DNA of 62,913 nt, counting the filler, from Olpidium bornovanus S191 (Eukaryota > Fungi > Olpidiomycota): NCBI GenBank assembly GCA_017911155.1. It is 30 parts of 30 records of this genome, joined end to end, with 100 filler letters (N's around TTAATTAATTAA, not from the genome) between each part and the next. Parts side by side here need not be neighbours in the genome. Positions count along the whole stretch, not along the records: positions 12,160 to 16,495 come from JAEFCI010008816.1; 29 more parts are not named here. One strand, 5' to 3'. The position numbers and the translations under genes are program-made. Shown here in pieces: positions 9,897-17,196 of this stretch (positions are counted from its first letter, which is position 1; each line of letters opens with the position of its first letter). The notes beneath the pieces were generated by a model, which saw nothing but the letters and a program-made list of their open reading frames with translations, had not been told where the DNA came from and searched no databases.

Positions 9897-10218
9897 GAGG
9901 CATTATGCGATGCAGCCCTCGAGTACCCCGCTGAACGGAACGTTGGCATCGGCGTGCTAGGTATGCGTGCACTGCCAAAGGCCGAGGCCAGAAAGCGCCA
10001 TGCGCATAATGATGGGGGACCTTGAACAGCGCCGGGATGCGCATTTCCCGGTTTAGTTCGCCAGTGGTTCTTCGGTCAGAGCGAAAGGACTCAATTTTGA
10101 TGCACATTAGGTGCCGCTNNNNNNNNNNNNNNNNNNNNNNNNNNNNNNNNNNNNNNNNNNNNTTAATTAATTAANNNNNNNNNNNNNNNNNNNNNNNNNN
10201 NNNNNNNNNNNNNNNNNN

Positions 10219-11810: not shown

Positions 11811-12235
11811 CTGAGATATACTTTCCATTTGGGGCAACCTTCTTCTGAGGCACATAAAAGGCGGGTGTTGGTCTGCTGTTTTTGTTGTGCTCCCCACTTC
11901 GCACACAGAGATTCCATTCTTTTTTTTCTTCCACATGCTTGTCCTTAGTGGATTCTGTCAGGTGGTGGACCAAGTCGAAACCGGAGGACGATTCCGCTGT
12001 TTTTCTTTCCGGACTCCTGAGAGCTACCACTTCGATGGCAGCTTCTGGGTCACAGAAGGNNNNNNNNNNNNNNNNNNNNNNNNNNNNNNNNNNNNNNNNN
12101 NNNTTAATTAATTAANNNNNNNNNNNNNNNNNNNNNNNNNNNNNNNNNNNNNNNNNNNNCATGCCAGCGGCTGACAATACTTTGATGGATCCGGACGTGA
12201 CCGACGGTTCCCATTGTTCTTGCGGGTGTCCGCAG

Positions 12236-15023
12236 CTCTGGAGGCGCACCTAATTATACCCGTTTTGAAGCGCCTGCGGAACAACGTGACGATTGCCATT
12301 TTTGCGGACCACTGGTGAATAATGCGGCCAATCTTCGCGTTTTCGCTTTGCCCTGTGGTGGTTTAGTGTTGCGAAGAGGCGTCGAAATCATAGTTTGACG
12401 CCGAGATCTGCCGTTGCAGGGGTTACAAGCACGAGGCGTTTGATGCGTCCGTGTATTCTCCAAAGATCCTCCATGACGCCGGCGTGCCGGTTGCTGTGAA
12501 AAGTGATCATGTAAGCGGCCGTCCTGAATTTTTTTTCATGCAAGTTCATTGATATCTCCTGTCGCCGGTCGATATTTCTCATGCGAACCTAAAAGATTTT
12601 TTTTTTCTCTCGCACCCTATTGGGGAACAGCCTGTTTTGAATGCCGTAAGGGTCGCGATTATCTGTAGCTCTTCCGTTCGAACAATGGACCATGTTAATG
12701 ACGTTATATTATTGGTTTTACGCTCAATTGTTTAGCAACACCTGGTCTACGAAGTGAGTGTCGGTTTTAACGACTCAAAGCCGTCCCGCTGAGAGCAGCT
12801 CCACGTGGCGCTTTATCCGCGCGCGTTCGCATCCAACGCCGGTTTTGTGCTGTTGCGTTACAGGCGCAAAAAGCGCACCATTACGGTATGACCGCGCAAG
12901 CTGCTTTGTCGTCGGTAACCACTGTTCCCGCCAAAGCGATGGGCGTCGGTCACCGGATAGGCAAACTTGCCGCCGGATATGACGCTGACGTAGTGGTAAG
13001 TGAAAGCCGCTTGGCTCGTTGTGATTCAAGGACCCCGTCTGCGCATCGCTTTCTGCGGTTAAGAACTCGCCAACGCTTTTTTGCGCCCATTCGCCTTTCA
13101 GATATGGGACAGACATCCTCTCCGCTTGGGCGCCTACCCAGTGCAGGTGTTTGTCGACGGCATCAGTTTGATTAAGGGGTCGAGTATGAAAGACCGAGAC
13201 CAGCTTCCGCGGGACGCTGCTCTTAGCAAGCCTCCTCCGTCGGCTGCCATATTCGACCACAAAATGAAAGCCTCTGGACCGGCGAGCTGCACCGAACGGT
13301 CCCGCAGCTTCGTGGTCAAAAATATTGGCACTCTCGTAACCGGTGAGCACGACACCCCTCTGAGCATGGCAACTATTGTCGTGGAGGACGGCAGGATCAC
13401 CTGCGCCGGCCGCGACTGCGACGTTGAGCGCCGCGATAGTGTGCTCGATGTGTACAACATCGACGGCGGTTGGGTTGTGCCGGTAGGTCGGAATTGCAAC
13501 GGTTGGACGTGTGGTGGCGGACAGCTTTTTCTGATGTACCTGCTTTCCGTTTCAGGGAACAATTGCGTTCAGCCAGTCGATGGGTCTGGTCGAAATCCCG
13601 TCTGAAAAGGCTACTTCGGACGGTGACCGACCGTCGTCGACGGATCCAAACAAGTTCACGTACGCGGTCGACGGCCTGCGGCTGGACAATGGCAAGCATC
13701 TGTACGTGGCGGAAACGTTCGGGAGTCCTTGGTGAAGTCCAGCATATCTACCTCTTTTAAGAAGATTGACAGGGAGCGAACGTTCTATGATCAGCCAGGC
13801 GGCCTTCCTCGGGGGAGTTACTGCCGGTGTAGTGGCTCCTCAAAACGCTCGCGGCTTCGTTTCCGGATGGTTGACAGCCTACCGTACCGGGTCGATGACG
13901 AGTATGCTGAAGTATATGGCGGTGGTATTGTGCGTCGAACCAAAGGTGTACGGACGCTTATCAGCCGAGTGAACCGTTCACTAGTCCTGGACAATCCTCC
14001 GGGGGTCATCAAGGACGTCGTGGGTCTTCTCGTGAAGCTCGGCGATGACGCGAAGGATGGTAGGTTTCCAGCCCACAGGCCTGGGGCCACGATAAAAAAA
14101 GGCCGGCACTCGTCCGCTCGCATATGTTGCGCCTCACTGTCCTTTCCGTTGCCGTTTTCGAAGACCTTTCATCGGTATCAAGCCAAATCGCCGCGCTGCG
14201 CGACCTTTTGGAGCAGTCGAAGAACTCGTCCAGCAACTCTCGCCACATGGCCGCGCTGGGGCGGGGCGAGATGCCGCTGGTCGTGCACACGCACTCGGCC
14301 GACATCATTTCGCAGCTGATCGTGCTCAAGCGCATTCACCCTCGCGTCCGCATCGTCGTCCTTGGCGGCGCAGAGGCGCACATCGTTGCGCGCCAACTCC
14401 GCGAGGTCGACATCCCCGTTGTGCTCAGCCCGCCCCGGTGCACCCCCGGCACGTGGGAGTCCCGTCGCTGCCTGCACGGCCCTCCTCTTGCCGAAAGGTC
14501 CGGAATTGATGTTCTTTTTGAGGAGGGCGTGGATGTCGGGCTAGCGGTCGAGGACGACGCGCTTGCTCGGAATCTTTTATGGGAAGCCGGTGAGGTGTTT
14601 GCTTTTCGTTTTTGTTTTGTCCGGATGATTTGCTTCTCGTCCCGGCCAACAGGTTCGGACGGCCGGCCGATTGAACGTCGATCCCGCGTTACGGTCTCAA
14701 AAATCCCAGGCTGGGCTCAGACGGACGTGCGCCACCGACGGCTGTCTGACGCAGAAGCCATTGCGCTCGTGACGTCCAAGCTTTCCGCTATTCTCGGTCT
14801 GGACAGGCCCTCCGCAAGCGAACACCGACACGGCCGCGATCCTCCTCCCCGCCGGCATGACCTCCTCCACCATGCCCCCGGCACGATCCGGGTCGGCGCC
14901 TTGGCCGACTTCGTCGCGTTCGACTCGCGCCCGCTCGAGTTCGGCGCCGCCGCGCAGCTGATTGTCGGAGGCGGCAAGCGCGGGGTCGTCTGCTGGCCCG
15001 CCCAGGGCGGTCTTACTGTCTAG
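12236..15023 (+). CDS. Tandem amidohydrolase (fungal CE9-like composite metal-dependent hydrolase), 5' partial, multi-exon
   Basis: Spliced: ALEAHLIIPVLKRL...ADHW|GYKHEAFDASVYSPKILHDAGVPVAVKSDH|PVLNA|QHLVYE|AQKAHHYGMTAQAALSSVTTVPAKAMGVGHRIGKLAAGYDADVVV|IWDRHPLRLGAYPVQVFVDG. A second repeat follows (PLVVHTHSADII, LGGAEAH, GALADFVAFDSRPLEFGA). Stop at 15023. Confidence 0.85.
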
Positions 15024-15682
15024 GGGGGGATCTGTGCTCCAATAATTTCATTGTCCGTCTGGATGCGGATGAGGCGGGGCCGCGGTCCGTGCCACCACCC
15101 GCTCCTGACCGCGTTTTGCGCCCCAACTCCCCTCTTTTCTCCTTTGTACAATCCACGGGCGAGAAACTTTCGGTAATGTGTACACACCGGGAATCTACTC
15201 AGTTAGCAGGTACATATGGTCTCTCTCTTTCTCTCTCTCCCTCTCTCTCCCTCTCTCTCCGGCTGTCTTTTACAATCTAATGACACATTCTGCAATTCGA
15301 CAAATTTTGGTTTTTTTTCTTTTCTTTCTTCCTCCGGTGCGCTCCCGCTGGCTGTCGTTGTGGGGAAAAAGGGAGAGGGTCAGAGTCAACAAAGGGGAAA
15401 AAAAAAAAAAAAAAAAAAACCGGCTCGTTTGACAAAAAGCCGAACAAACGCGTGGGGGGAAGCGGGGCGGGCGGTTCTTTATTGTTATCGAACGCAACGC
15501 TCCTTACCCCCCCCCCCCCCGCCCCCCATTGCGGTAACAGAAACACCGCCGCCCTGACATCCAACCTCCCCTCCCCTCCCCCAACCCTCCACCCTGACCC
15601 TAAAATAAAAGGACGCACCCCGCACGTCCGTCAGGTTTCGCCTCGGTTTGGAAAAAAAAAGGAGGGGGTGCCTCTTTTTTTT

Positions 15683-16410
15683 TCACAAGGGCTCCCGTTT
15701 CTCGCGGAGGCGGTCGTAGGCGTCCCAGCACCGCTGCCTGTAGCCGGCGAACTTCGCTTCTATCCGCGCCAGGGCGGCGTCCTCCTCCTGCGCGACCAGG
15801 TCCAGCTGCCGGTAGAGCCTCTCGCGCGGCTGCGCCCGGAGCTGATCCTGCGGCGACGTCGATCCGCCGCCGCCTACAAACGGGACCGGCGACAGGCCCG
15901 GCGTGCTTTTCCTGCGCGGGCCTGACAACGCGCCGTGCTGGTCCTTCGCGGCGGCGGCCGCGGGCGACGACGACGACGACGGCGACCTGCTGCTGGACGA
16001 CCTGCCGATCAGGCCCGGCGGCCTGCCGCCGCCGGCCTTGGGTCGGACCAACTTCGCCTCTGGCGGCGACGGGGAGGGGGGGGAGAGCGGCTGCCGGACG
16101 TAAAAGTGGAGGTACTTGGCGGCTCCGTCCGCCGCCCAGGAGAGCTGCACGATGTAGGGCCGCTCGTCGTTGGCCAGCGCCCTGATGAGCTTGCGGTGCA
16201 CCAGGCCCTCGGCCGACCCCCTCCTCTCTTTGGGGCCCGTCGCAGACAACGACGACGACGACGACGACAGCGGCGGCGGCGGCTGCGGCGGGAGCACCGA
16301 GGAGGCGTCCGAGGAGCCGCCGTCGAGGCCGTTGTCGTCCGACGCGTCCCACCCGCCCGCCCCGCCGCCGCCGCCGCCGCCGCCGCCGCTGTCACCTTGC
16401 GTCGCGTCGG
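15683..16410 (-). CDS. RASSF-like protein, last exon: end of RA domain plus C-terminal SARAH-like helix, 5' partial
   Basis: Acceptor ggcgcag| near 16410. HRKLIRALANDERPYIVQLSWAADGAAKYLHFYVRQ (16092-16200) resembles the RA C-terminal R.L.DDE.PL...L...L.FVL+ motif. LRAQPRERLYRQLDLVAQEEDAALARIEAKFAGYRQRCWDAY (15716-15841) aligns without gaps to the RASSF SARAH pattern. Confidence 0.6.
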
Positions 16411-16430
16411 CTGCGCCCCTCCACCGCAGT

Positions 16431-16479
<49 letters not shown>

Positions 16480-17196
16480 CGCGGGGGGGGGGGGANNNNN
16501 NNNNNNNNNNNNNNNNNNNNNNNNNNNNNNNNNNNNNNNTTAATTAATTAANNNNNNNNNNNNNNNNNNNNNNNNNNNNNNNNNNNNNNNNNNNNAGCCG
16601 AGGGGGGGGGGGGGGGGGGGGGGGGGGTGTACAGAATAAAGGGGCAAAATTAAGGGGGAAGCTCAGGCACTGCGCGCACCAGCCCGCGTTGCCCCTTTGT
16701 AGAATGCCCAGCTGCTCCCGTGGTATAAAATAGGGCTGGAGCAGACTAGTACACAAACGCCCCCAGAACACGAAATAAAGTTCTCCTTCCTTCGTCTCCG
16801 TCTTCGGCCCGGCTCCAACAGGGGCCGCCCGGAAAAGGAACGCCGCGGCAAAGGGCCGAAGCGGCGTGCGATCAATTTTTCGGGGTGGCACCGGAAGCGG
16901 GGAGCGTGGTGTTTTCTTAGTTTTCCCGCAAAACCCCTCCTCCCACCCCCGGTTTCCTTTCTCCGCGCCCCGCCCGTTCGCGGTCCGCCGCCTTTCTTTC
17001 CCCCGTGAAACTTTTTGGTGCGTGCGGGTATCTCTTTTACATGACAGGGCCCGTCGTCGTGCGAAGAGCCGATCTAGACAAAAACAAAAACAAAAACAAA
17101 AAAAAAAATGGCCAACGTCCCGCAAAGGAACGGATACCTTCGAACCGGCGAAACCCGGCGGTGTCCCGCACCCCACCCCCTTCCCCTCCCCTCGTC

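Follow-up and report, generated by a model that had tools for sequence, protein, structure and literature searches.

A transcribed, apparently lineage-specific gene end in Olpidium bornovanus encodes a predicted terminal amphipathic helix with faint residue-level resemblance to SARAH domains

The window analysed here is a 62,913-nucleotide stretch of DNA from the zoosporic fungus Olpidium bornovanus S191 (GenBank assembly GCA_017911155.1), joined from 30 parts. Our analysis concerns a single 4.3 kb piece of it at window positions 12160-16495 (JAEFCI010008816.1), which carries part of an amidohydrolase-family gene on the plus strand and the 3' coding end of a second gene on the minus strand. 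The plus-strand neighbour (12160-15023) is spliced, is apparently composed of two amidohydrolase-like halves and runs past the left edge of the piece. Its relatives, which carry PF07969/PF01979 and are 33-45% identical, include an MMETSP transcript and a protein of the fungus Acaulospora colombiana (37% identity), the only named one. Eight GT..AG introns of 73-120 nt are supported by RNA contigs, and the gene contains a 15-nt micro-exon at 12631-12645 (CCTGTTTTGAATGCC). Contigs of run X7 over 12994-14709 skip three introns of the RNA run (12994/13101, 14058/14163 and 14588/14709), so this run, which had been guessed to be DNA, most likely derives from a cDNA library and not a genomic one. At position 12458 an X1 RNA contig carries T where the window carries C, 40 nt from the contig end, a mismatch that could reflect strain or allele variation or else an artefact of the contig end.

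On the minus strand, an open frame runs from the poly-G edge at 16495 (a G run of ~60) to a TGA stop codon at 15683-15685, and because the piece ends in this poly-G run only the C-terminal 185-270 residues of the product are visible. In protein order, ~95 residues of poly-Pro, poly-Gly, Asp-rich and poly-Ser sequence are followed by GLVHRKLIRALANDERPYIVQLSWAADGAAKYLHFYVRQ, a linker of ~80 residues, LRAQPRERLYRQLDLVAQEEDAALARIEAKFAGYRQRCWDAY, and ten last residues (DRLREKREPL) before the stop. The peptides quoted in the preliminary description are thus present in the sequence, translated from the minus strand of 15683-16495. The low-complexity continuation of the frame (16205-16495, minus strand, GC3 0.92) is either coding, as an expanded loop, or partly intron.

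The gene is real and is transcribed from the minus strand. The locus is present in two RNA runs, X1 and X2 (shares 0.91 and 0.90), X1 being from the same organism. An RNA contig (run X1, record 2) spans 15266-16268 with zero mismatches, its 771 nt comprising 650 + 86 + 35. The joint at 15351/15619 (depth 42, run X1 contigs) reads CT..AC on the plus strand, that is, a GT..AG intron of a minus-strand transcript, located at 15352-15618 in the 3'UTR, and the same contig continues into a downstream 3'UTR exon at 15266-15351. The open frame had been taken for the last exon, which holds for the coding part of the gene but not for the transcript as a whole, since this further exon lies downstream. In many eukaryotes an exon junction that far past the stop can target an mRNA for nonsense-mediated decay, and, as the 3'UTR intron begins 64 nt 3' of the stop, the gene may be regulated in this way. 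The other end of the X1 contig, at 16268, falls within a (GAC)n(GCG)n run, and as an AG acceptor is absent there, this end represents a break in the assembly graph and not an exon boundary. RNA depth drops from 96 to 2 beyond ~16306, reads are cut at the repeats at 16349-16445, and no upstream exons were recovered from RNA beyond the low-complexity block, the contigs breaking at GAC/GCG repeats; two raw-read RNA runs contained almost no reads. Homopolymer and microsatellite tracts, namely (CT)n, A21, C/G runs and (GCC)n, are dense at 15214-15532 and 16349-16495. As reads and contigs break at such tracts, they are probably also the reason why the assembly ends at 16495.

Stop codons are scarce in DNA this GC-rich, several overlapping ORFs of 125-250 aa occur on both strands, and an exhaustive protein search found no homologue of the gene, all of which would suit an accidental ORF, or a UTR, whose peptides would then be meaningless. 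Such an origin is nevertheless very improbable. Codon-position periodicity is strong in exactly this frame, with GC1/GC2/GC3 values of 0.76/0.45/0.93 in the part encoding the terminal helix and 0.67/0.46/0.94 in the upstream part discussed below, the remaining frames read Arg/Ala/Gly/Pro-rich, with the character of off-frame translation, the region is covered by a spliced minus-strand transcript, and the encoded helix is well formed and amphipathic (pLDDT 81-87). By its codon-position periodicity, the frame of the quoted peptides is the real coding frame.

Searches for relatives place the product in no known family. Pfam (E<=10) returned no family for the 270-aa fragment, the tail or the upstream stretch, phmmer searches of the PDB with a 204-aa fragment and a 55-aa tail gave zero matches, and an exhaustive phmmer search of 1.84 billion protein representatives found no relative, its sole match, a 725-aa tandem-repeat protein (P0001), being false and repeat-driven. 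In the ESM Atlas, the best scores for the whole fragment and the tail (0.57-0.64) belonged to helices of CCDC23, PKK and Sds3 and were noise. A first scan of metagenome contigs found no relative, and the single locus returned by a second scan (L001) was rejected as the receiver domain of a bacterial response regulator, which contains RELANDERPYV by chance. At positions 10001-10063 of this locus (contig Ga0265320_10000434), RELANDERPYVILV faces the window's RALANDERPYIVQL with a chance identity of 57% over 21 residues, and the receiver domain adjoins a hybrid histidine kinase. On present searches, the gene appears to be lineage-specific.

The preliminary description had read the fragment as the end of an RA domain followed by a C-terminal SARAH helix, the architecture of an animal-type RASSF adaptor, and had named the lack of an RA or SARAH profile match as a ground for abandoning the idea. 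The RA, Nore1-SARAH and Mst1_SARAH profiles (PF00788, PF16517 and PF11629) were all without a match in the Pfam scan, so that the idea falls at this first test of its own. The test is weaker than it looks, because only half of an RA domain would lie in the piece and because human SAV1 and Drosophila Salvador, whose SARAH domains are bona fide, are not matched by the two SARAH models of Pfam either; a missing SARAH match therefore says little. SARAH domains form antiparallel homo- or heterodimers with other SARAH domains. In a true RASSF-type adaptor, the RA domain would bind GTP-loaded Ras/Rap and a diverged SARAH domain, set on an expanded linker, would pair antiparallel with the SARAH domain of a Hippo/MST-like kinase, and a SARAH reading therefore requires that a SARAH-bearing MST/Hippo kinase or Salvador exists in the same genome. 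We regard an adaptor of this kind as unlikely, and the evidence from the helix, the upstream stretch and the linker bears on it in turn.

AlphaFold2, run on the single sequence as a monomer, predicts a continuous amphipathic helix of 52 residues (15698-15853, minus strand; residues 130-181 of a 185-aa fragment) with a pLDDT of 81-87 in a model of pTM 0.23. Within it, a 42-residue stretch, LRAQPRERLY...RCWDAY (15716-15841, minus strand), aligns without gaps to the SARAH domains of RASSF5 and MST1. The register proposed earlier is the one chosen by each of MAFFT, BLASTP and HMMER, and this agreement of three aligners favours a RASSF-type adaptor. The earlier count of 11/42 ungapped identities to the RASSF1 string quoted there is correct; the string itself is close to real RASSF5 (48.8 bits), to whose SARAH domain (PDB 4lgd_E) the window has 9/42 ungapped identities. 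Also favouring the adaptor, MST1 and RASSF5 have ten invariant columns, of which the tail matches six exactly (L, L, K, R, Q, A) and another three conservatively; at least six identical matches, in any register, were found in 0.2% of plain and 0.6% of pattern-preserving shuffles (P 0.002-0.006). The confidently predicted helix lies at the extreme C-terminus, the position expected of a Nore1-type SARAH domain, ending 10 residues before the stop compared with 10 in MST1 and 8 in RASSF5. It likewise has the length and amphipathic character of the SARAH helix h2 and its core I..K[YF]...RQ, in which ARIEAKFAGYRQ aligns to KIQQVQKKYDKFRQ and EIEEIRQKYQSKRQ. The Smith-Waterman score against RASSF5 was 42 (shuffle mean 24.7, sd 4.6), reached by 11 of 5000 plain shuffles, BLASTP gave 18-22 bits (E 0.002-0.008 for a single comparison), and phmmer --max scored the tail at 9.2 bits to RASSF5 and 5.7-7.2 bits to MST.

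These values are modest beside those of established SARAH domains. With phmmer --max, the comparison of RASSF5 with MST gives 14-20 bits, above the tail's values. A leave-one-subfamily-out calibration, with profiles of verified RASSF5, MST, Hippo, SAV1 and Drosophila Sav sequences, gave the window tail 2.1-6.8 bits, far under RASSF5 (22.1), MST (~12) and SAV1 (22.9). The SARAH and RA comparison sets were small, consisting of vertebrate RASSF5 and MST together with four PDB-verified sequences. A profile search with SARAH seeds had only vertebrate RASSF5 and STK3/4 among the matches listed, and these served as calibration sequences only. The MST1, SAV1 and afadin sequences compared were those of the PDB. 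The Smith-Waterman score against MST1 was not significant (32 against a shuffle mean of 26, reached by 696 of 5000), and the reversed tail still scored 3.8 bits against 5.7 forward. Shuffles that preserve the hydrophobic pattern reached the observed score in 7% of cases for RASSF5 and 31% for MST1, and under the same null the profile scores were reached in 8% (ten-sequence RASSF5/MST1 profile) and 13% (six-sequence, three-subfamily profile), and a pattern-preserving P of 0.07-0.13 counts against the adaptor. The similarity thus beats plain shuffles, yet does not rise above database-wide or pattern-preserving nulls.

A more specific point against a SARAH domain concerns its first helix. The h1 motif [FW][STQ][ILV]x[ED]L reads FSIPEL in RASSF5, WTVEDL in MST1, FQLADL in SAV1 and FSLPEL in Drosophila Sav, and is absent from the tail, where the aligned residues are QPRERL and both the aromatic and the aliphatic residues are gone (WDAFSIPEL in RASSF5 compared with LRAQPRERL here). 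The window shares with the SARAH domains of MST1/2, Hippo and Salvador (PDB 2jo8, 4lgd, 6ao5 and 6bn1) the long C-terminal helix and the core I..K[YF]...RQ...DA, but the single-sequence monomer model shows one unbroken helix compared with the h1-kink-h2 of SARAH domains. MST, RASSF5 and SAV1 score 12-23 bits on each other's profiles, higher than the window tail, which falls in the range of the most diverged SARAH domain tested, that of Drosophila Sav. As this bona fide domain itself scored only 5.1 bits in the same calibration, and as Pfam misses both Sav proteins, a very diverged SARAH domain would look like the window tail. On balance, a generic pairing helix is more likely here than a SARAH domain.

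The upstream structured element, LVHRKLIRALANDERPYIVQLSWAADGAAKYLHFYVRQ (16091-16204, minus strand), is modelled by AlphaFold2 as a helix and a beta-hairpin (pLDDT 72-79). A complete RA domain has a beta-beta-alpha-beta-beta-alpha-beta, ubiquitin-like fold, and the first half of such a fold is absent from the piece, with only poly-Ser/Pro/Gly sequence upstream of 16205, which counts against a RASSF-type adaptor. The segment VHRK...WAAD (16127-16201) matches the end of the first RA domain of afadin at 12/25 identities (26.6 bits, E 7e-7 for a single comparison), a score that none of 20000 shuffles reached, plain or pattern-preserving; the afadin segment agrees with PDB 6amb_B. In an unbiased PDB search with the 51-residue stretch, the only match was again afadin RA1, at the homologous position but with a PDB-wide E of 1.1. 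That an RA domain should be the sole PDB match favours the adaptor, as does the circumstance that two independent weak matches together give one two-domain architecture in the right order.

Controls place the afadin match at the level of noise database-wide, because a 43-mer from the afadin RA end matches the unrelated beta subunit of PheRS (E 0.36) and a profile of window plus afadin likewise recruits PheRS from the PDB (E 0.011); this intermediate-sequence test recruited no other RA domain from the PDB. The matching segment lies at residues 662-688 of the PheRS beta subunit (PDB 3pco_B and 7n8y_B) and is unrelated to afadin. True C-terminal halves of RA domains still score in Pfam RA (15.7 bits for RASSF5, 35.7 bits for afadin RA1), in contrast to the window's stretch, which gave no score, and the missing RA match therefore weighs against the adaptor in spite of the truncation. 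The resemblance is moreover afadin-like and not RASSF5-like: against the RASSF5 RA domain, with which the stretch has no detectable similarity, BLASTP found nothing and the Smith-Waterman score (19) was below the shuffle mean (20.2). With afadin/AF-6 RA1 (residues 54-96 of 6amb_B) the window shares VH....R.L..DE.P..VQL.W..D, its hydrophobic strand YLHFYVRQ lying where afadin has RFVLKNE, but the remaining architecture of afadin is absent from the window. With ~38 residues between disordered flanks, the stretch is too short to fold alone. It probably closes a larger domain that begins upstream, for which an RA/ubiquitin-like fold is the best candidate, with roughly even odds. A protein in which an RA-like domain is followed by a generic pairing helix is also unlikely, at about the odds of the RASSF-type adaptor or slightly above.

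Between the two elements lies a Ser/Pro/Gly/Ala-rich linker of ~80 residues (15860-16090, minus strand), predicted to be disordered (pLDDT 44-54). In classical RASSF proteins the SARAH domain follows directly after the RA domain, across a linker of fewer than ~10 residues; that adjacency is not seen here, where the distance from the RA-like stretch to the helix is ~83 residues as against 7 in RASSF5, another point against the adaptor. Classical RASSF1-6, represented by RASSF5/Nore1 (P0130; Pfam RA 125-210, Nore1-SARAH 218-257), are among the nearest known systems. The order of an RA-like end and a terminal helix ending 8-10 residues before the stop is alike, and ~42 helix columns align without gaps with L..L, EE, K[FY], RQ and A conserved, but RASSF5 scores 52 and 64 bits for its two Pfam domains whilst the window has no score for either.

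Taken singly, each of the two matches is at noise level; taken together they suggest a single known architecture, with its elements correctly ordered and at the proper end of the protein, and so make a RASSF-type adaptor far more likely than it would be for an arbitrary gene. The absent h1 motif, the long linker, the silent Pfam RA profile and the afadin-like character of the first match lower the odds again. The lack of relatives in protein and metagenome searches counts further against it. That the element upstream is no RA domain and the helix no SARAH domain is a reading to which we give a little less than an even chance. The best explanation overall, which we consider probable, is that the locus holds the 3' coding end of a lineage-specific gene, whose product is mostly disordered with two structured elements, and no demonstrable RASSF orthologue.

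The best-supported description is thus anatomical: a folded domain ends here, a flexible Ser/Pro tether follows, and the protein closes with an amphipathic helix that most likely pairs as a coiled coil. The gene, its frame and transcription, the helix prediction and the residue-level resemblances are direct results of this analysis, whereas the upstream fold, dimerisation and binding to Ras or a kinase are inferences. The visible product would be mostly disordered low-complexity sequence, interrupted by two structured elements. The first, of ~38 residues, would form the last strands of a larger domain that begins upstream of the piece, and the second, tethered by 80 Ser/Pro-rich residues, would be a C-terminal amphipathic helix ~50 residues long, whose most likely role would be coiled-coil pairing, with itself or with a partner. 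The reading as RA plus SARAH, an animal-type Ras-to-Hippo adaptor, is a possibility rather than a finding.

At present the locus is a lead, built on a truncated gene with two motif matches at noise level, and a candidate to check on the full locus. It also carries a lesson, in that a match of 25 residues at 48% identity can arise by chance: PheRS of bacteria has the same motif, and 'LANDERPY' turns up in a response regulator, likewise bacterial. One paper, which defines Hippo as a kinase with a C-terminal SARAH domain, reports it from the chytrid Spizellomyces punctatus as well as from Amoebozoa and Apusozoa (PMC7035326). The literature thus already places SARAH-based signalling before fungi and animals diverged, and the S. 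punctatus Hippo, a report that does not extend to the present species, makes a SARAH partner plausible in zoosporic fungi, in favour of the adaptor. Counting against it, no report of a fungal RASSF was found in the literature searched. That a zoosporic fungus should possess a highly diverged RA-SARAH adaptor, with an expanded disordered linker, which pairs with the SARAH domain of its own Hippo/MST-like kinase, is doubtful on this evidence. If confirmed, it would add a strongly diverged protein to a known family, in a lineage new for that family, which is interesting but incremental, and would offer a tractable non-animal system for SARAH pairing. With a fungal RASSF, Ras-to-Hippo coupling would date back to the ancestor of opisthokonts, and a Ras-to-Hippo-kinase adaptor module, beyond the SARAH kinase alone, would be older than the divergence of fungi from animals, Dikarya having lost it later.
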